Below the pieces are notes generated by a model. It worked only from the letters and a program-made list of their open reading frames with translations, did no database searches and was not told where the DNA came from. A stretch of 64,000 bases of DNA from Dicyema japonicum (Eukaryota > Animalia > Dicyemida). The stretch spans positions 364,748 to 428,747 of the forward strand of contig RDEW01000045.1 in NCBI GenBank assembly GCA_011109175.1. The letters are read 5' to 3'. The position numbers and the translations under genes were made by a program. Positions within the stretch are counted from its first letter, which is position 1, and each line of letters starts with the position of its first letter. Positions 13,664 through 36,415 of the stretch are shown here, one piece after another.

Positions 13664-16600
13664 GATAATAGTCGACAAAATTTGAGAACTTTTTCCAGTC
13701 GACATTTTTGTTGTCGGTAAATAAATCAGGTTGCTTTACAATTGACACTCTTCCTTCAAGCGTAATCATAACGGGATTATGGTCACTGCTGGTCTCGTAT
13801 AGCACCGTCCATTTTGTTAATGTTTCGATGTTTGGTGAGTAAAGAGTGAGATCGGGGGACGATGTCCTGTCATTCGATCTGTAGGGAGTCCTTGTATTGA
13901 ATGTAGGGTTGTTTAATATTATCAGGTCATCCAGATTCGATAACAATTAGTTTCCTCTGACATCGCATGGTTGGTTCTTGAACCATGTCGGATGCTTCGC
14001 ATTTAGGTCTCCACAAAGTAACATATTTTTTGATTTGTCGATTTCTGACAGGGAGAACCTGTTAAAACTGAAAACTTAAGAGTATTCATCTCTGTGGCTT
14101 GCAAAAGGAAACAATTCTCCAAAGTCGAAAGCCTTATGTTTAGTCCAGGACAGAAATTTCTTTTTTGGAGGACTGAACACGATTTGCAGTTTGTGTAAAA
14201 AAATAAAAAAAACCGTCGATTACGCTACAAGATGTGGAAAAATGTTGCATGGAATTTACGTCACAAGGCATAATGAAGTCGTACGGTGCCTTCACTTCCA
14301 TTTCTTGCAAAAAAAGGTCTCAAAAACCACTCAGTGAAAAAATTGTGATGAATGAATCGGTACAGATAAGAGTTGATACATTTATTAAAACCGAAATAAA
14401 CATTGAACACAACAAACCTGATTTATTTATCTACGACATAAAGAAAAATCTATTTTCTAATTGTGTTCAATTTTTTATAGATGTGTGATAAAAAGTAAAA
14501 CAACGAATGAATACTTAAAATTTGGAGTAATACTTTACGAGCACAACAAATAACTTCCTATGTGTCTTATGTGTAAGAAGGTTGTTACAAATGAAAGAAT
14601 AAAGCCCACAAGAATGTCAATTCATCCTGAGAAACTTGATGCAGAAGTTATTTAGTTTCTAGTCTGAAATATAATTATGAAAATCGTCTTATGATTAATC
14701 TTGAAAAAAGCATATTATTATTTTACAAAATATCGCAATTGATAGTAAAATCAAGAAAACCTCATGCTATTAGAAAGTCCTTAATATAAATGTCAAAGAA
14801 ATATTGATGATTGTGATTCTGATCTAATAAGTTAATCAATTTTTATCACAATAGTTCTGTCTCCTCCAGAATTGATGAAATGCAAAAAAATTTAAGAAAA
14901 TTAAATTTTATGAACTAAAATTAATGAGAGAATTGAATCTGCTTTCCTTCTTCTATTCTTTCAAAACAGGAACTCAGTTTTGATAACGGCGTACGTAAGA
15001 GTTGCATAAGATGTTCATCAGTTAATTGGTTGCGATATTTGGTTTTGATCCGTGTGAGTCTGCTGAACAGAGTTTCACAAACATACGTTGATCCAAATAC
15101 AGACGAATTTTTATACGCATTCGTAACCATTAAAATTCTACTTAAAAATTGTAATATTTGATTTTTCTTAAATATTGTGGTTAGGCGACTGCATTTCAAT
15201 GAGCTCCATTTGAAATTCGTCTGGAACGGTTGTAGGATCTATAGGAGTGAAAAATAATTTAATCATTGGCAAGTTATCCTTGAAATTATTAAAAATTCTA
15301 TCAAATTCTTCAATTAGATCGCGAATAACGTGAGTATATTTCTTAAGTATATTTAACACGCTTTTAGACATTAAAAATAATATTAATCTTTATTTAACAA
15401 ACAATAAAAAAGTTAATATATTTATTAATCAACAACCTTCCTCGCCTGCCTGTTCGCCAGCCTACTCAGGCAGGTTCGATTCTGGTTGCTGAAACAACTC
15501 CGAGAGCGCATTGTCAAATTGAACCCTCTGCCCATATTGCATCTCAGGGCTCTGCCTCCTATACTCCAGTGTCAAGCTCTCTAGGGTCCGCTTTAACACA
15601 GTGGACTGTAGATAGGTCTGGAGCTTCCTATCTACCCCCAACTGCTTCAGATAACCCTTGTGGTACTTTGTTGCAATTCCTTCCCACGTCACTACTATAG
15701 GAATAACGAGGACCTTGCAACCAAGCATCTGCCCCATTTCGTTTGCAAGAAAGTCATACTTCCTTTTTTTCTCCACCTCCACAGTCTGCAAACGGTCTTG
15801 AGACGTGATGCCAACTTCTATGATAAGGACTTGGCCAGACTCTTTATCGTGTACCACAATATCCGGGCTTGACTTGGACCGAGGTACGGATAACACTGTC
15901 TACCTTAATTTGGACCCTGGTGTTCTCTACTACATATTACACCTTATGAGTCCGCAACTTTCTGGTGTGGCGAATACCATACTTATTGCATAGTAGAAGA
16001 TGAAGACTCCTTACTACCTCGTTATGCCTCCACACATAGTCGTGGCAGAGCATGGATCCACATCGAGTGGCTAAATGATCAACCGACATGTTCCTTGACT
16101 TACAGTGGGGACATGTATTTGTTGATCGACCCCAAAAAATATTGCGGTCTTGCATATACGTGTACAACGCCTCCGATCGAGGTGAGTTGTCACCGTATTT
16201 TAGCCATATTGTCGACGACTTAAGGTCGACATGTAGGTTGTCTAATGCTCTGAAAAGGACCTTATGAAGGCTTTTTAAGTTGATCTTTTCCATCAAATTA
16301 TTATATTGTAATTCGATCAACGCCTTCACATTTACTAGCCCACCTTCATCAATACCATACTTAGCAGACAAAAAAGGTCTGATAGTGCCTAGGTGGATTG
16401 CCCGTGTTTCTCGGTCGTTATTATAGCGTGCTTCCTAGCAGACACACTTGACCCAGCTATCAGGGTGTCGTGCATTCGCATTAGGATACGCTCACTTAGT
16501 TGGACTACTCCACACAGTCCACGGCCGAATTTATCACGGGGTAAATATAGTCTCTCCTTATTGGCTGCCAGCACATGGACATGGTTCTCTCTGAGTACTC

Positions 16601-23954: not shown

Positions 23955-26900
23955 TCATTCCTTAATTAATTTATTAGAAAGATGTTGTATAGCCGAGTTG
24001 AGGGAAGCGACATTAACCTTCATTTGTTTAATATCATTCCCAAGGTTGACAATCGTCTCATCCATTGAATTACTATTTGGCTGATTCCAATTGTTTAGGT
24101 TTGTTGACTTTATGTTTATATAAAATTTTCCATCTTCGTTTCTTAATTTTCGTTTTATTCTTTTTTTAAATAAATTCAAAAATTTGGACAAAAATAAAAC
24201 ATTTTCCATTTCAATCGCAAACTTTATTGCTCTCACCTACAGATAAGCAAATTCAGACCTTCCATCCAAGTCCTCGACTAAAGGCTGCGTAGGAATCGTT
24301 CATCATTGCGATGAGCATGTTTAGGAGAATTACTCCAGCAAAAATTATGAACGAAATGTAAGTTATCTTGACTAATACTCCCTTGTTGTTGCTCAACTGA
24401 TCTAATTCTGTCAATGAGAAAAAGTCCCCCATTCCAACCATCCACAAAAATGTCTGAAATATGGAATCAAACGAGTCCGGAGTTGAGACTGCGATTCCCA
24501 AGGATTCTCGAGTCAGAGCCCTGATTGTGAAAGAAAACCCAATGAGCACTGTAATAAACACAATGATGAATTTTGAAATATCGTGGACAATCATATGTTT
24601 CAACATCAAAGAGAAGTGGTGTATTGTCTGGAACCCCCGTGTAAAGTGAAGAGTATCCAACCAACCAAGAATCAATGTCAACGCCAAAAAATGAACTTGG
24701 AATTCGTTTTCTGTAAAATAAAGAGCAAACCAAATAAATGCAGTCGAGGACCACAAAATGGACGTGAAATAAGAAGAAACCAAGAATCCGACGAATCCAA
24801 TGGCTGCTGATGTTACAAGGCTTGAATATCTTCTTTTGAATATTTTTTTGGATGATCCTTCAGATTGTGTAATAACGAATGTGATGAATTTCATGACATT
24901 ATAAATCGAAATGAAAGAGGGCCACACAAGGAACACGGAAAACACTAATTTTGGGGGAGAAAACGAATTCGAACCAACAGGAAGGAGTTTGATCCCATAA
25001 TATCCGTAAAGGCTCATATGGAATACGTGGATCATCAACAGAAATATGTATAAAATCTGATAAGGACTCCAATAGTGCTTAGCCACTTGGTATATCGGCT
25101 GAATATTTAGGATTGTTGTGGCTACGTGCAAGTCATTCAGTCTTGTTATGTGGTATAGCAGGGATTTGCATTTCTTCGGTTTCTCGTCTTCCGGGTATGT
25201 TTTTGAACTTCCATGTTTCCGTATTGTGGTGTTGGGGGCTATGTTAGTAATATCATAGCTGATAAACTCGGAGTGGGTGAACTTGTTGACTCCTTCTAGA
25301 TTTAGGAACGCTTCTAGCATTCTCGAGGACCCCAAAGCCGCGGCATACACCAAGGGATTCATTTCATTTATATTCAAGGTCTCGTATATTAAAAACGACA
25401 GTGCTTCCTTCTTGTATACACTGTAAATTGGTAGAAACGAATCCGGTATTGACACGTGCTTGTATTGGCACCACCAATTCACAACGTTGGCCACAATTTG
25501 CTGGAACAAGAATGTAACATTCGATTCGCTCCCTTTATGAGACAAAAGTACCAATTCATGAAGGACTGTGTTTCCGCTCAAATCACGTGCTCCTAGATTA
25601 GCCCCGTTTCTTATCAGTTTGGTCATTTCCACGTGGTAGTTCTTCTCAGCAGCGATGTGAAGGAGGGATTTTCCTGTTTTATTTTGTAAATTCAAGTCAA
25701 GCTGAAAGTTGAAAGTATTAAGAATCTTATCGAATACGTTCAAATTTCCACATAAAAGAGCCACGTGGAGTTCGGTGTTCCCTGCCTTGTTTTGTTGGTT
25801 TATTTTGAGTAAATTGAAAAAGTTGAACAACTCTTCTCTTCCATTCTGTGCTATCAAGTGTAATATGGTATTTCCGTTGATGTCGGTCTCCTCTATGAGG
25901 GAGTAAGAGCTCATTTTGATTGACTGGTTCACCAGGGCCTCCAACAAACTGTAGCTCGTCTTCTTTGAAGAAAATGCGCAATGAAGGACGGTTTCTCCCT
26001 TTTTGTTTTTTATAGACAAATTTGCCTTCTTGAGGATCACCTCGGCTGCTTTGTTGGATCCAGAGACCAGTGCCAAATGAAGGGGAGTGTTCCCATCTGC
26101 ATTTTTGACGTCAATGTTATCAGAATCAATAAATTCCGACAAAATTTCTGCCTATCACTCAATCAATAAACTGCCTGATCAGCGAATGCAGCCACGTGGA
26201 TGAACGTATTTCCATGTGAGTCTCTTTCATTGAAATTCAACTTGCATTCAAATAGGAGTCTCAAATATTTAGTAGATCCTTTAGAAGAAGCCAAGTGAAT
26301 CGGGTAAGTTGCCCCAGAAAAGGTACCACTTATTCTTGCAGTTTGATGACCTTCTAATTGGAGGGCGTAGGATTTGAGAAGAATTAGAAGATATTTTTCG
26401 TTTTCTGATTCCATGGCGTAAGTCCAGGCGTCATATCCCCTTTTATTTCTGACTGAACTGTTGGCTCCAAGAGATATAAGACGGGTAAAGACGTTAATCT
26501 TTTCTTGCTGAATTGCTAGCAAAAGTGGAGTGTTTCCAAGTTCATCTTTGTCTTCAAGAAAGTTCCTGCACTCTAGGAGATACTCCAACAAATTTAGATG
26601 GCCAAAATATGCCGCCACATGGATTGGTTTCATTCCATATTTGATTTTCGTGTTCACATCAGCTCCGTTGTTGATCAGAATTTTCAAAATTTCTAAATTC
26701 CCAAGCGAAGTGGCCATCGTGATCGGAGTCTCCATTCCAAGTTTCCTCCGAGTTGACACTTTCGCTTTCCCTCTGTTGATTAAAAGTTTCACCATCTCCA
26801 CATACTGGTACCTCACAGCCCAATACAAAGCAGTCGATCCCTTATCATTTTCAACATCAACCAATGCTCTGTGCTTTATCAGAAACCTAAAGTCAACGGT

Positions 26901-27704
26901 AATCAAACTCGACAATGTTCAAGTGATTATTTCTCGAAGCAAACAGAATTGCAGTGTCACATTTATTGTTTGTAATGTTTAGGTTTACTTTGTGCTCATG
27001 TAAAAATCTCAAAAAGTCAAAATTTCCGAAAAAGCATGCCAAATGTATTGGCTTGAGACTTCGAGGGCGCTGTCCCTCAGATTCCATCAGCATTTCTTGG
27101 TCCATCAACTTTCCAACTTCAAAGCTGCTGAACTTTGAAATTAATAATCTGGCCATTTCGACGTCCCCCGAAATCGCAAACTGATGAAATGCGGTTCTCG
27201 ATGATTCCGCGTTTTCCAACTTACAGATGAGTCAATATCTTTACCAGGACAGTAAATTTTGCTTTAAGAAACTTCTTGTTACCCACATTAATCAAATATT
27301 GAGTCATTTCTCTCAAATCGTGTTTTACAGCCAAATGCAGCAAATTCTCATTGTTCGCGGATTTTATTTGATCCAAATTTCCTGAAGGGTTATTCTGTAG
27401 AAACTAGAATACTTTGATAAACTATGTGTCACCCTGTTGACGGTTTTTATTGAGTTTTCTTGATCACGTTTTCCGTAAAGTTCGAGTAATTCCGTGAAAA
27501 TTTGCTTAAATTGCGCGGAATCTGATTTTTCCGCAGTAAAACTTCTCCGAATGTCCTTAATAGATATTTCTTCGACTTCCTTTAGTAGATTAGAGTTTTG
27601 GTTCTTATTTGTACTCAAGAAAAATGGACCTGATTAATCTGTTTTTGGAGTTCCCTGATATCTCCGTCCACGTTGTAGTCGTTTCTGTGGAGGTCGAATT
27701 CCAT
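23955..27704 (-). CDS. TRPV-type transient receptor potential cation channel with about 18 ankyrin repeats, 7 exons
   Basis: Removing six GT-AG introns (27604-27629, 27382-27404, 27220-27244, 26887-26908, 26152-26171, 24237-24258) gives one open frame of 1204 codons. It contains ankyrin motifs, six hydrophobic segments, pore VGMGD, S6 LLNMLIAMMNDSY and a TRP-box-like GWKV. The start codon is uncertain. Confidence 0.9.
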
Positions 27705-29477: not shown

Positions 29478-32400
29478 ATGATGAAAACCATAAAACTACT
29501 AATATCCCACCACAACCAAATTAGCGACAACGAACATTTTATTATCGCCACCGACGATAGTATATATTCATTTAATTTTCAGAAAATATTCAAAATAAAA
29601 TTAACAAAATACTATTTAATTATTATCCATACAATAAACAAAAATATTCTCTCAAAATAAACTACACCAAAATCACCGAATTATCCTACCCCCAGTCAAA
29701 TGCTTCCAGAATAATACTCCTTCAATATTCCTCAGATTTTATCTCTCTGTTGAAACCATTTGGGATTCCCATCACTATCTTCTGTCCCCTTTCAGAGGAC
29801 CCCGTTTTCCTTGATGATTTCAAAGTACTCTTTGACTGCCTGACTTTTCTCCACAGCCACGACTATTCTGTGAAATACTTATTGTTTCAGTCACAGGAGT
29901 GTGTTCCGAGTCATAATTATTTGGGTAGACCTTTTTGCTGATTCTCAGAACTGATCCAGGAGATGAAGGATACTGTTGAGTCTCTAGAAAATGCGTTCTC
30001 TGTGATTCGTCTGATATGTTCGCAAATACTATCCACTGCTTCTAATCTCGGGATATTCTCTGCTTATTTGGTCGCTAAAAACGTCTTAACGTCATACCAG
30101 AATGACTCAGTCAAGCAATCTCGTCCCCACAGTGAGGTTGAAACAACGTTTCTTAGTCTCTTGAGTTGCTTTACAATTCACTACCAAGAAATACGAGACA
30201 ACTTTAGAGTGAATTCCTCTCAAAATCTGTTAAATCTCACAACCAACAAGGTTTACTTAGTATTTATTAAGGTCACTGTTCTTGTTGACTATGTTAATGA
30301 TTCTCTGAAACAAAATCGTTCGTGGAGTGCTGTTATAATAACGTGGGCTGTCCATGATGCGTTTTCCCTATGTTGCATATTAGAAGAACTGTCATCCATT
30401 GATGAAAAATTTGCCAACTTTCGTCCAGTCATCTATCGTCACTCAGTTGAGATTTGAGGATATTATAGACTAAGGTGCCGATAAATTCAAAGAGATTCAA
30501 TTTGGTCTTTACTTCCTTTGATGATTACTGGAAAATGTCGGGTATGACTGATAACATCATATTCTTTGATTTTGACGAGGATTCTCTACCAAGATCTACG
30601 ATTGGAGTATTTATGTCTTTCAGTTTAGAACTGTAATATTCTGATTTTATGCTCACATTCCAATTTCACTCATTTGAAGCTCAGAATGGAAATATTTACT
30701 ACGATTGCAGCCATGTCAACTATACACGTTGATTCTCAGAATGAAGCGAAAAAGTGGGACTTTGAGGAACTGAAATTGGCGGAGATGGAAGATTCGAGAA
30801 AATTAGATCAGAGTGGTGATTCTCGGTTATGTCTGAGGAATTCAATTTACTATTTGAACCATTTCTATGATAATTATGATATCAAGGAAGATGGTGTTTT
30901 CTACGACACTTGCGTTAAACAGCAGGGATGTGAAGAATCACACAATTTGTGTTATTCCGTGGAAATATGCTTAAATTTGGGGATTTCATCGGATGAGACT
31001 ATCAAGGTCGTTGTTTACTGTAATCGAGTAGGGAGACGTGGCTGAGACTAAGAAACTGGCGGAAATGAATGCTGCCTTGAAGGCATGCGAACAATTGATT
31101 GAGTTTGGTACTCGCAATGTTTAGTTTAGGGATGATTGACTTTGACACGTTGTCTCCCGTCAATAGAGAGTTTCTTCTAGACCATTTGCCTTCAATACAT
31201 AACATTTCTCTTATAAATACTTACAGATCTGAGGTTCCCCCAACTAGTTACTTTGTTAGACATCGATCTGTTTGAGAAATGGGGATTTGGGAACTCAAAA
31301 ATCGTACTATTTGTACAAAATCAACGGACTTGGTGGAGAGCGACCCATGGGAATCCTTATTGTTGGCAAAATTCCGTTGGGTCTCCCGGAAATTGAATTG
31401 TACGACAAAACCGAAAAACTATTAATCAGTTTTACGGAAAAATCAGAAAATAACGTTTTCACGACTGATCAGCTAGATTTACTGAGATTCTTCCATTCAT
31501 ACATACTCACACAAGTGATCCACATCGACGACAGTTTACTTGAATTTGGGGAGACTGGGGAAACAGTAACTTCCTTATTTGTGGTCTTATCCGCCACTGG
31601 AAAAGAAATCGACTACGAATTCATGGAGGATGTGAAAAAGAGTTCAATCAGTGATATCCCCTTTACGTTGGAATCGTAAAATGTGTATTTACTGGTAGAT
31701 TTACGGACAGTAACCTCAACCAACTTGTTCTCTCAACTAACTATGGGAGAAAGCGGAGAAATTACTCAGTTTTAGGAATTTCTGAAAAAACTGGGGATTC
31801 TCTGACGGAGGACGGGGAATCTTTCACTGTGAGGTACCTGAAACGACATGGAATAGAATTACGGCATCCTCAACGAAGCCTCATAGATTGTGTCAAATTC
31901 GATGACAGAAAACTTTGTTTTTTAAGGCCTGAAAGTTGTGAATTCGTTATAACGTAGAAAATAGAGACGTTCATGTTTCCCACGTGGTTGCTGATCTTTG
32001 TTTTGTCCACCCACTTCCAAAGTCTATGTGGATACAGATTATGTATCTCCCTTCCATCTTCTTCCGTCTCTTGAACCTTTTGAAAACGAGTCAACTATAT
32101 TATTCGCTCAAAAGTCAGTTTGAGGAAGTACAAGGCACGGATTTCAAGTTTCCCTCAATTATTGACTTTAACGTTGCCCTCACACTCACCAAGTGTGAGG
32201 AGATGGTAAATCTCGAATGCTACGAATTCCTTGGTGACTCCATTCTAAATTATTTGGCCTCTTTGAAACTCTATAGTTTATTTCCTGCAGTGAGTGGTTC
32301 AACCCTTAAAGTTTTGCATCCCCATTATGTAAGAATATCCCTTACATTTAGACAAACAACTTTCTGTTGTGGAATTTTGGGAAGAAGCTGAATCTTCCAG

Positions 32401-33141
32401 CATATATTCAGTGTGTTAAGCTTGAAGTCGGTGGTTGGCTTCCTCCTTGCTATAAATTACGGGAGAATACGACCAAAATGAGATTAAGATACTATTTGGA
32501 CAGGGAGATCACCGACAAGTCAGTGGCTGATGTGGTGGAAGCAATCATCGGTGTTTTGTTTATTAAAGTTGTCCTTTTTTTACATTTCAGGGATCTGTTG
32601 AGGCTGGTACGTGGTTCTTCAACCTTATCGAAGTCAATAATATCTTTGAGACTCTGTACTTACCCACACATGAGCTTGTCTTGTCCTCTGAAAAAAATCA
32701 TTTTGATTGCTTCTACAGATTTAAGTGTGATTGGCTTGCTGAGTGTGTGTTTACTCATTCTTGTGTGCGTTATTCGATCCCTCGGTCAAGATTGAGCTTT
32801 GTTGGAGAATCTGTCATAAAGTGCCTTTTTTCTCTGCACTTGTTTGAAACTTATGAGAACATGACTCCTGGTTTGATTGGGTGAATATTTCAGAAAAGCT
32901 CACAAAGATGAGGGATTCGTTTGTCAGTAACGGATTCTACGTCAAATTTTGTGTCTTAAATGATTTTCAGAGATATTTGAAATGTTATAATTTGGATCAT
33001 TTGGAAGATGTTGACGGTGGTTTGGATTCAATGACTGATACTTTTTTGGCGTTTATAGGGGCTGTTTATTTTGATTGTGGAAGTGATCTGGAACTCGTTT
33101 GGGAGGTGGTATATGAAAATTATTACTTGAAAACTATGTAA
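29478..33141 (+). CDS. Dicer: Dicer-like endoribonuclease, divergent, multi-exon with tiny introns
   Basis: Ordered domains: helicase-C-like remnant (TNKV..LVDY), DUF283 (LAEMNAALKACEQL), platform (RPMGIL..LLRFFHSYIL..IDYEFME), PAZ/connector (LCFVHPLPKSMWIQIMYLPSIFFRL), RNase IIIa (ALT..ECYEFLGDS; DKSVADVVEAIIG) and RNase IIIb-like (YRFK..FTHS..LTKMRDSFVSN..GAVYFDCG). The start is approximate. Confidence 0.88.
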
Positions 33142-33217: not shown

Positions 33218-33503
33218 TTTTACACAAGGAAAACTACCACAAGGATTATCTGAAGCAGTAAGGGGTAGATAGGAAGCTCCAGGCTATCTACAGTCCACTG
33301 TATAAAAGCGGACCCTAGAGAGTCTGACACTGGAGTATAGGAGGCAGATCCCGGCGATGCCATATGGGCAGAGGGTTCAATTGGACAAGGTGCTCTCGGA
33401 GTTGTTTCAGCAACCAGAATCGAACCTGCCTCAGGAGGTTGACTAACAGGCAAGGAAGGTTGTTGATTATTAAATATTAACTTGTTATTGTTGGTTAAAT
33501 AAA
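33218..33503 (-). mobile_element. Short 3'-end copy of the R4/Dong-like family seen at 1715-1990, lying between the Dicer and HIPK 3' ends
   Basis: Diverged nucleotide match (in inverted orientation) to 1715-1980, e.g. gttgtttcagcaaccagaatcgaacctgcc and ggaaggttgttgatt. On the + strand it reads as the element's sense 3' end. Confidence 0.85.
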
Positions 33504-36415
33504 GCGGGTTATATTAGAGAAATTGGATTTGAACTCGCCATAGGTTAAATCCTCTAGTGCAGCCAGAGTAAGCTATGAAATAAAATTATACTAAGTCCAA
33601 GGGTTAACTCAAACTAACTGATTTCGTGATCCTGACGTGTTCCGGTAGACACCAGGCACAGTTGATTCAGAGGACAATGGCAAGGAAGCTGAGGTCGATA
33701 CCAGAACTCACCACCAGATCGAAATCCGTCATCTTTTGAGTTAGGTGAATCCGATGACGCTACTAAGGAAAGAGAAGTCTTCTATTAAGTGACCACACAG
33801 CACCAATCTGAATTGACTGAAGTATATAGGGTTGAAACGACGACGTCTAAAAAGATCGTTGGTTTGTGGGAACAATTTTAAATGTCTATCATTGATTTTA
33901 TTTACAAAATAGGATTTTTCAAAATCTTCTTCGATGCCAGGAACAGGCACTTCGTTGATACGGAAATCGCTAAGCGTCAATTTTGAATCACTTAACGGAA
34001 CTTTCCATAGCACCCCTTGGGCCAAAAGTCAATTCGTATTTGGAATCCTTTACAAAATATGAGACGAAACCTTCTCTCTAAGGAGATTAATCCAGGAAGA
34101 CGTTCACTCAATTAACGCCGCTCCTAAAGATATCCAGCCTTGAGGAGAATGCGTTTCCAATCTCTCGTATAGCACCTCTGATGGCAGGGCCGATCACATC
34201 CGAATTCTAAAACGGGGATGGAACAAAGCTTAAATAGTCCCCAAGCGATAAATTAAATTGTATCTATCACTGCAAGAATAACTGACAAATCGAGATTGAG
34301 ATTCATCAGAGTTTCTGGAAAACCGTCCGAAATAAATATGGAAACTAAACTTTTATTTGTAATACAGTAAATTTGTCTCAGATAGTGATACATGTTTGGG
34401 GAATCCTTAAATTTTTATCTCCGTACAAAGTAGTCTCGAATCACTTTATACAGATTTTACAAATTCATATGACCACATAAAGATGTCGAAGACAACTAAT
34501 TAAATAATCCCAGCTTTTAACAACTGGAAGACTCTCAAGTTTCCACCAGGGATCCCACTGATTTTTTGAGTTGTCTCCTTGAATTTCGACAGACGAACTT
34601 GATTGACAAATCCTTCCTAAAGACCGATTGGGATTTCTCGGATAGTCGGTCGTTCACATACGTGCTGATCAAGTCAATCCGCTTGCGATTAATTCCTGAA
34701 CCTCGAAGAAAATCAGGGCACACAAGAAGAGTTAATTAATCAAAAAGTTATGAAGATCTAGAAGTTTGATCTCCACTAGACCAATGTTCAATTTCTTCCG
34801 AGCAATTCTCGAGTGACTAAGTATTATTAACTAATTCAACCTCCGTACTGTCGACTTCAGAGTTAGTTGAGAAGGTATAGATGCTATCTTTAGTCTCACT
34901 TCCCTTTTGATAAGACTCAATGTAGCAACTCGGCATTAATCCAAAGGCCATATTCCGACTAAAATAAACAACAAATTTCACTAGTCGGAATCCTCAGGCA
35001 TATAATTCATGAAATTGAGGAATGAGTGACTCCGAGCTTGTTGAGGACCCATCCTATTAGACGGATCTACTTTAAGTAGTTCATCGAGGAATGAAAAGTA
35101 TAAAATCGAGTCTTTGACAAATCCAGAGTACTGGGATTCATGGATTTCCCAGGTGGGAAGATTATCAAAAATCATCGACAATTGCTTGTATAAATTAAAC
35201 TCTATTACCGGTTTAATGACTTTTATTTCTGTCAGTTTTGTGATTCCGTCTCTATAATACTCTTCTTCTGACTAGTGAATGTAGACACGTGCTACCTTCA
35301 TTAGCCACATTTGACCGTATAAAATAGACATATGCCACGAAAAAAACTTACCACAGTTATCTGCTTCAATGATCATATCGTCTGGGGGCATCTCTATATG
35401 TTTAGTGATGCAACAGAGCTGAGAATTTGAAAACGATTAACCTGTTGGTATTCGTCCTCTCCCGGAAAAAGAATGAACCCAGAAAAGAGCTCGGCAATAA
35501 TGCAACCGAGTGACCACATGTCAATTTTATCGTCGGGTTTGCACCCCATCAATACCTCAGGGGCTCTAAAATAGAAAACCTACGTGACCTGTAGACTAAG
35601 GTCTGTAAATTTATGAAATCCTTTATCTCGTCAATGAAGACGGCCGATCCAAAGTCAACCAACCTCACGATATAAGGGTATTTGTGGTGATCCACCAGCA
35701 TAATGTTGGAGGGCTTCAAGTCCGTATGAACAATGTCGTGTTGTTGAAGTTTCGATAACGCTTGCACCATCTAGACGTTAAGAAACTCTGACCTGATATG
35801 TAATCGATCGGATTGCGTGAATTGGGAGTTGCTTCTCTGTTTCCATGAATTCTTTTAAGGTAATAGAGAGAAGCTCAGTCACTAAACATCGGAATCCACG
35901 ATGGCTGCAATAGTCGATTATTTCGAAAATAAAGTGTTCTGCTCCCTTATTTTCTTTTAGAATCCACAGAATGTAGTCCTTAGATTAGATTCATGAGGTA
36001 CCTCGAAGTAATAAGCATTTTCGTTTTTCTTGTTGATTCGAATGAGTTTAAGAGCCACTGAAGTCCCAGTTCTAACTTGAGTCGCCTTATAGACTTTTGC
36101 GAATGCTCCCTGACCAATGTAACTATGTGCGGTGTATGATTCATCCATAGATGTGATAATCTGATTAATTTAAGCTAAAACTACATCGTTTTTGTATATT
36201 TGGCAATCACCTTCTGTTGGTTCCCCCAATAATATTTTGGAGGGGTTGGGACCTTTATTAGTAATTTTTGATTTCGAATTATCACCCATATATTGTGGAG
36301 TATGAATCGTCTAACGTGAACAACGCTGTTGATGACGGAAAATTCAATTAAATTCCAGATTTTACGGCTTAGGACCCACTCTTGTCGGACAGGAAGTAGA
36401 CAAATTGTAATTCAT
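33500..36415 (-). CDS. HIPK: HIPK-like (DYRK/CMGC) serine/threonine kinase with a long divergent C-terminal tail and many tiny introns
   Basis: IGQGAFAKV, VALK, HTDLKPSNIMLVD..PY.VRLVDFGSA, LQTLVYRAPE and IDMWSLGCIIAELFLG motifs. Introns at 36161-36184, 35979-36001, 35771-35792, 35566-35588, 35419-35441, 35272-35295, 34959-34981 and 34817-34840. Both ends are approximate. Confidence 0.85.

Follow-up and report, generated by a model that had tools for sequence, protein, structure and literature searches.

Each active site of a Dicer cuts one strand, and the locus described here raises the question of whether Dicyema japonicum, a tiny octopus parasite, may make its small RNAs by means of a Dicer that cuts one strand only. 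The gene lies in a window of 64,000 nucleotides (the whole stretch of DNA that was analyzed, C319:364748-428747; positions without a scaffold name are those of the window), and an earlier note, made from the letters alone, had proposed that its RNase IIIa domain is intact, while catalytic residues of its RNase IIIb domain are replaced. RNase IIIa cuts the 3p arm and RNase IIIb cuts the 5p arm (PMC6695490, PMC7827160). In human Dicer, the metal-binding residues of RNase IIIb are E1705, D1709, D1810, and E1813, and hotspot mutants at these positions, and also at G1809, show a selective failure in 5p-strand processing (PMC6695490). We asked what the dicyemid gene has at these positions, whether it is an intact gene, and whether it is the only Dicer of the animal.

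Gene structure and reading frame

Using three-frame translation and exon-chaining along the shortest stop-free path, we obtained a gene model on the forward strand that, as far as modeled, extends from 29949 to 33141 and ends with a TAA stop codon at 33139-33141. It consists of 11 exons (29949-30445, 30469-30606, 30629-31006, 31032-31102, 31125-31233, 31260-31675, 31699-31934, 31958-32328, 32352-32567, 32591-32870, and 32894-33141), the last two of which contain the stretch 32785-33080 highlighted in the earlier note, and these are separated by ten GT..AG introns of 22 to 26 nt each. The first in-frame ATG is found at 29963, giving about 981 codons. Upstream, a possible further exon lacking an ATG was seen at 29750-29924, and coding-like ORFs were absent at 27.6 to 29.7 kb. 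As controls, the reverse complement was put through the identical procedure, as were 60 equally long stretches drawn at random from the window, and none of these 61 stretches could be read free of stop codons with such introns. These results indicated that the open frame of the Dicer gene did not arise by chance and that the gene is structurally intact.

The D. japonicum assembly (67.5 Mb in 377 scaffolds, 36.7% GC) has a mean intron size of 38 bp (PMC6736024), and reports of ultra-short introns in animals are limited to myxobolid myxozoans and D. japonicum (PMC13644364). Placing the introns revised two details of the first description: the RNase IIIa intron, taken to be about 60 nt, measures 23 nt (32329-32351), and the "PG.LT" motif quoted for RNase IIIb is interrupted by the intron at 32871-32893, the spliced reading being P-E-K-L-T. 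The description of RNase IIIb as conserved in its fold residues and in frame held true.

Domain architecture

All domain searches were run exon by exon, and the scores below are those of exon pieces. The N-terminal region of about 335 amino acids (29949-31006, forward strand, as are all domains of this gene) contains no recognizable DExD/H helicase, and no Pfam or PDB sequence match was obtained for it. A language-model feature search returned RNA_helicase_helical and Helicase_C for this region (score of 0.91), a weak lead only, and the region may be a degenerate helicase remnant. It is followed by a putative C-terminal part of the Dicer dimerization domain (DUF283; 31032-31102). The PF03368 score of this piece, 20 bits, lies below the cut-off of 23.7, and this locus was the sole match in the genome scan. 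The Dicer platform domain (31260-31675) scored above the cut-off for PF20931 (34.7 versus 26.5 bits) and was likewise the sole match genome-wide. The PAZ domain (31699-31934) is divergent, with a 44-amino-acid piece matching PF02170 at an E value of 0.011 and 16 bits, which is below the cut-off.

The connector helix and RNase IIIa are encoded by two exons (31958-32567, with the 23-nt intron mentioned above), and the connector motif aligns with residues 1033 to 1095 of human Dicer. RNase IIIb is also encoded by two exons (32591-33141), separated by an intron of the same length. PF00636 matched the four exon pieces in the order IIIa-IIIa-IIIb-IIIb, giving two tandem domains in one polypeptide, and each piece aligned with the corresponding domain of Dicer chains in the PDB. 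Only 31 residues separate the last RNase IIIb motif from the end of the protein, leaving no double-stranded RNA-binding domain (dsRBD) at the C terminus, and a genome scan with dsrm gave no match at the Dicer locus.

The order of the putative DUF283, platform, PAZ, connector, IIIa, and IIIb is that of the animal Dicer-1/DICER1 enzymes (human, 5zak; fly Dcr-1, 8dfv), and the connector plus IIIa exon is closer to fly Dcr-1 and human Dicer (E values of about 1e-10) than to fly Dcr-2 (6e-5). Compared with these enzymes, however, the dicyemid protein is about half as long, has a short linker between IIIa and IIIb, and lacks two parts that Dicers usually have, a recognizable helicase (missing also from Giardia Dicer) and the C-terminal dsRBD of the animal enzymes.

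RNase IIIa and RNase IIIb sites

The peptides ECYEFLGDS (32215-32241) and DKSVADVVEA (32514-32543), both on the forward strand, carry the RNase IIIa site. Alignment to human and fly Dicer placed GAA at 32224-32226 (E1316 position), GAC at 32236-32238 (D1320), GAT at 32529-32531 (D1561), and GAA at 32538-32540 (E1564), such that all four metal-binding acids are kept, as in animal Dicer-1, and RNase IIIa is intact as first described. The IIIa exons matched fly Dcr-1 and human Dicer with E values of 3.5e-11 and 1.9e-10, and further matches to the two had values of 2e-3 and 1e-2. In a manual alignment, and as a loose observation, a Lys takes the place of human S1344 in the dicyemid protein; S1344 is a IIIa residue adjoining the IIIb site (PMC6695490).

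A different picture was obtained for RNase IIIb, whose peptides read SRLSFVGES (32786-32812) and DSMTDTFLAF (33025-33054) on the forward strand. Using phmmer against PDB chains, the first IIIb exon aligned to residues 1671 to 1731 of human Dicer (5zak) and the second to residues 1806 to 1835, pairing human RLEFLGD with RLSFVGE and human GDIFES with TDTFLA. The E values were 3.6e-11 for plant DCL3, 7e-3 for human Dicer, and 5e-6 and 8e-6 for the mouse and human IIIb domains, respectively. In this alignment, the E1705 position is occupied by Ser (AGC, 32795-32797), the D1709 position by Glu (GAA, 32807-32809), the G1809 position by Thr (ACT, 33034-33036), and the E1813 position by Leu (TTG, 33046-33048), while the Asp at the D1810 position is kept (GAT, 33037-33039). 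Thus, three of the four metal ligands are changed, and they are changed at the exact positions of the human hotspots, in agreement with the substitutions (E to S, D to E, and E to L, with one D kept) and with the human residues named in the earlier note. When RNase III of E. coli is mutagenized, change is tolerated least at the counterparts of D1709 and E1813.

The E, D, and E changes require at least five nucleotide substitutions over three codons with no indel, and a sequencing slip is therefore unlikely to account for them. With PF00636, the two IIIb pieces scored 19.2 and 23.7 bits (sum of 42.9) and the two IIIa pieces 16.0 and 18.0 bits (sum of 34.0); IIIb thus scores no lower than IIIa, which fits a domain retained as the structural partner of IIIa. 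The residues at the ligand positions strongly suggest that RNase IIIb is catalytically dead, although one metal might still be bound by the Glu at the D1709 position together with the kept D1810.

RNase III genes in the assembly

Scanning the whole assembly (67,542,437 bases in 377 pieces) with PF00636 and PF14622 revealed two RNase III loci only, the Dicer gene of the window and a locus at C57:1056.7-1057.7 kb. The latter belongs to a gene on the reverse strand (C57:1056.2-1059.3 kb; L007) with many introns of 21 to 27 nt, whose best match among structures is Drosha (E value of 5e-7). It reads NERLEFLGDA..ADTVEALIGA in the first RNase III domain and NQRLEFLGDS..ADLFEAFVAS in the second, followed by a dsRBD, and all eight acids are kept. 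When the IIIa and IIIb exons of Dicer were themselves searched against the genome, they matched only themselves. The assembly thus has no Dicer other than the window gene, and the listing of paralogs that the earlier note had called for yielded one Dicer and one Drosha. The alternative of a normal Dicer accompanied by a decaying or degenerate paralog is ruled out for this assembly, which contains no second Dicer.

In the search for orthologs, a word search with the first IIIb exon gave no match, and a phmmer search of 1.84 billion proteins returned only one low-complexity false match. A 628-amino-acid ORF from the same window, used as a control, was likewise without a near-identical match; these collections therefore contain no dicyemid proteins, and the lack of matches is uninformative as to expression or relatives.

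Could the unusual picture stem from the assembly itself, either because the codons are misreported or because it lacks another Dicer whose IIIb is intact? Such a Dicer could have been left unassembled in this 2019 draft, which has a gap rate of 4.1% and in which BUSCO and CEGMA recover only about 76 to 77% of conserved genes (PMC6736024), but an assembly error would not typically produce five or more separate substitutions in three codons while leaving them free of indels, and neither four independent genome scans nor two self-searches found a paralog, so we regard this explanation as distinctly unlikely.

Predicted mechanism

Since the IIIb fold is kept and its metal binding appears lost, the enzyme would cut only the strand reached by IIIa. 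We propose a working minimal Dicer in which IIIb serves as a structural partner only and the 3' arm is cut alone, giving 3p-only products, a reading of the sequence that we hold to be evenly poised between right and wrong. In such an enzyme, composed of a degenerate N terminus, a putative DUF283, platform, PAZ, IIIa, and IIIb, without recognizable helicase and dsRBD domains, RNase IIIb with its kept fold would serve as the pairing partner of IIIa and help to hold the RNA duplex, but would not bind the catalytic metals. The platform and PAZ would measure from the duplex end, and only the strand reached by IIIa would be cut. In a hairpin made by Drosha, this strand would be the 3' arm; in a duplex, it would be the strand with its 3' end in PAZ. 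Small RNAs would then be 3p-only, paired to an uncut piece of 5p arm plus loop or lying in a nicked duplex, and they would be passed to the conserved Argonaute, probably with a TRBP/R2D2-like partner.

The anatomy, the changed residues, the single copy, the unbroken frame, and the partner genes are read from the sequence itself; beyond this, we infer that IIIb would be inactive and IIIa active, that the gene would be expressed, and that the outcome would be 3p-only, the last because of the known behavior of the human DICER1 IIIb hotspot mutants (PMC6695490). More tentatively, and with the balance somewhat against it, all Dicer-dependent small RNAs of dicyemids may come from the 3' arm via a one-cut enzyme, with 5p families such as let-7 having been lost.

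Dicer divergence, PIWI-domain loci, and microRNAs

Dicer is far more divergent than Drosha or Argonaute in D. japonicum; the RNase III profile scores of Drosha (62 and 41 bits) are far above those of Dicer. The two enzymes thus differ greatly in evolutionary rate within one genome. Relaxed constraint would also fit the high divergence of Dicer, and the gene could then be a relic, or alternatively a non-catalytic scaffold for binding or loading, with the small RNAs being made independently of Dicer by PIWI pathways or by Drosha, Argonaute, and trimming. The loss of recognizable helicase and dsRBD domains is consistent with this possibility, and about six Piwi-domain loci are present in the genome.

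The absence of let-7 points in the same direction. Allowing up to three mismatches, no match to the let-7 22-mer was found in the genome, and Rfam scans of the genome for let-7 and mir-1 gave no match among about 60 scored of thousands of candidates, a share too small to be informative. A lack of let-7 would be weakly consistent with a 5p defect, and it would equally fit a general loss of microRNAs in a reduced parasite.

Against a relic or scaffold stand three features of the gene. The frame of about 981 codons is intact together with its ten tiny introns, a state never seen in the controls; IIIa keeps all four acids despite the high divergence; and drift lasting until five or more substitutions had been fixed in three codons should presumably have brought stop codons or frameshifts as well. 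We thus consider it unlikely that Dicer is decaying or non-catalytic, and we retain the working one-cut enzyme as the preferred reading.

Argonaute and candidate dsRBD partners

A working gene need not leave one strand uncut, as the second cut could come from a partner nuclease, from Argonaute slicing, or from weak non-canonical activity of IIIb relying on the Glu and the kept Asp. Among the Piwi-domain loci, the one on C190 is an AGO-clade gene (match to human AGO1 at an E value of 1e-47 over the last 97 residues) whose slicer site shows D, D, and H, as would suit Argonaute slicing. A tandem-dsRBD gene at C257:646.7-647.1 kb (L012) had R2D2 and TARBP2 as its best matches, and it is present in at least three closely similar copies, two further ones being at C72:~5.2 kb (L013) and C224:~107 kb (L018); a TRBP/R2D2-like partner of this kind would suit a partner-assisted cut. 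Two acidic ligands are also left in IIIb. However, the Leu at the E1813 position and the Ser at the E1705 position are unable to bind metal, and single changes there in human DICER1 already impair 5p-arm processing (PMC6695490). Furthermore, no RNase III domain beyond those of Dicer and Drosha was found in the assembly, and a candidate partner nuclease was not found. Cutting of both strands is, on this evidence, rather unlikely, and cutting by IIIa alone is the reading followed below.

The C224 copy of the TRBP/R2D2-like gene has a frame break in its second dsRBD, and two copies have transposon-like ORFs beside them; a mobile element may have spread the gene. The dsRBD matches in the genome comprised Drosha, these copies, and an ADAR-like gene, and DGCR8/Pasha was not found among them. 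The ADAR-like gene (C223:1194.4-1194.9 kb, reverse strand; L015) has two dsRBDs followed by a deaminase-like region, and A-to-I editing of double-stranded RNA may exist in the reduced dicyemid genome.

Comparison with known enzymes

Loss of the human IIIb site is, to our knowledge, known only as a somatic tumor mutation. The tumor hotspot mutants (E1705, D1709, G1809, D1810, and E1813) are affected at the same positions as the dicyemid Dicer, in which four of these five positions are changed relative to the human enzyme. In the mutants, IIIa cutting is kept and 5p-arm cutting is lost (PMC6695490), and they serve here as the working model of how the dicyemid enzyme would behave. The two cases differ in that a tumor mutant carries one somatic change in a diseased cell, whereas the dicyemid changes are several, fixed in the germline, and present in the only Dicer of the animal found in the assembly.

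Giardia Dicer (2ffl) retains both catalytic sites. The likeness of the dicyemid protein to it is the absence of recognizable helicase and dsRBD domains (PMC7827160). The Giardia protein is a protist enzyme, whereas the dicyemid one is a reduced animal Dicer.

In trypanosomes, RNase III pairs with one active and one degenerate domain cut one duplex strand only. In the editosome, KREN1-3 pair with partners bearing a degenerate RNase III domain, such as KREPB4 (PMC5648035), and this is the nearest precedent in principle for an active domain working beside a degenerate one. The arrangement differs in that each domain belongs to its own protein, within a complex for mitochondrial editing that is unrelated to Dicer or small RNAs. 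Full-text word searches of the literature, which may miss some papers, found none on dicyemid Dicer or dicyemid microRNAs and no natural Dicer with a dead IIIb.

If the proposed reading is true, D. japonicum would have evolved, throughout the organism, a counterpart to the hotspot state of human DICER1 syndrome, animal life and development would be possible with 3p-only dicing, and a ready-made strand-specific nicking enzyme for double-stranded RNA would be at hand for study. If the changes are fixed, they would provide a natural experiment on the capacity of 3p-only small RNAs and on how a microRNA repertoire adapts, and would show how far a small-RNA pathway shrinks in an extreme parasite. 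If the gene is instead drifting to loss, the decay of Dicer beside a conserved Drosha and Argonaute would also be unusual.

Neighborhood of the Dicer gene

About 90 bp past the Dicer stop codon begins a dispersed repeat of about 280 bp (33231-33504), further copies of which lie in the window at 1702-1981 and 15388-15669, the copies being 82 to 90% identical. The repeat, which looks like a SINE-like element, also occurs near the Drosha locus (L008:3343-3551) and beside a TRBP-like copy (L018:2035-2294). Upstream, head to head with Dicer, a large ankyrin-repeat gene on the reverse strand (24253-27618) encodes a multi-pass membrane region at the C terminus and resembles a TRP-type channel; its best database matches are only 25 to 35% identical. 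Downstream of Dicer, protein kinase exons with the motifs HTDLKPSNIML and DFGSA were found on the reverse strand at 34981-36148.
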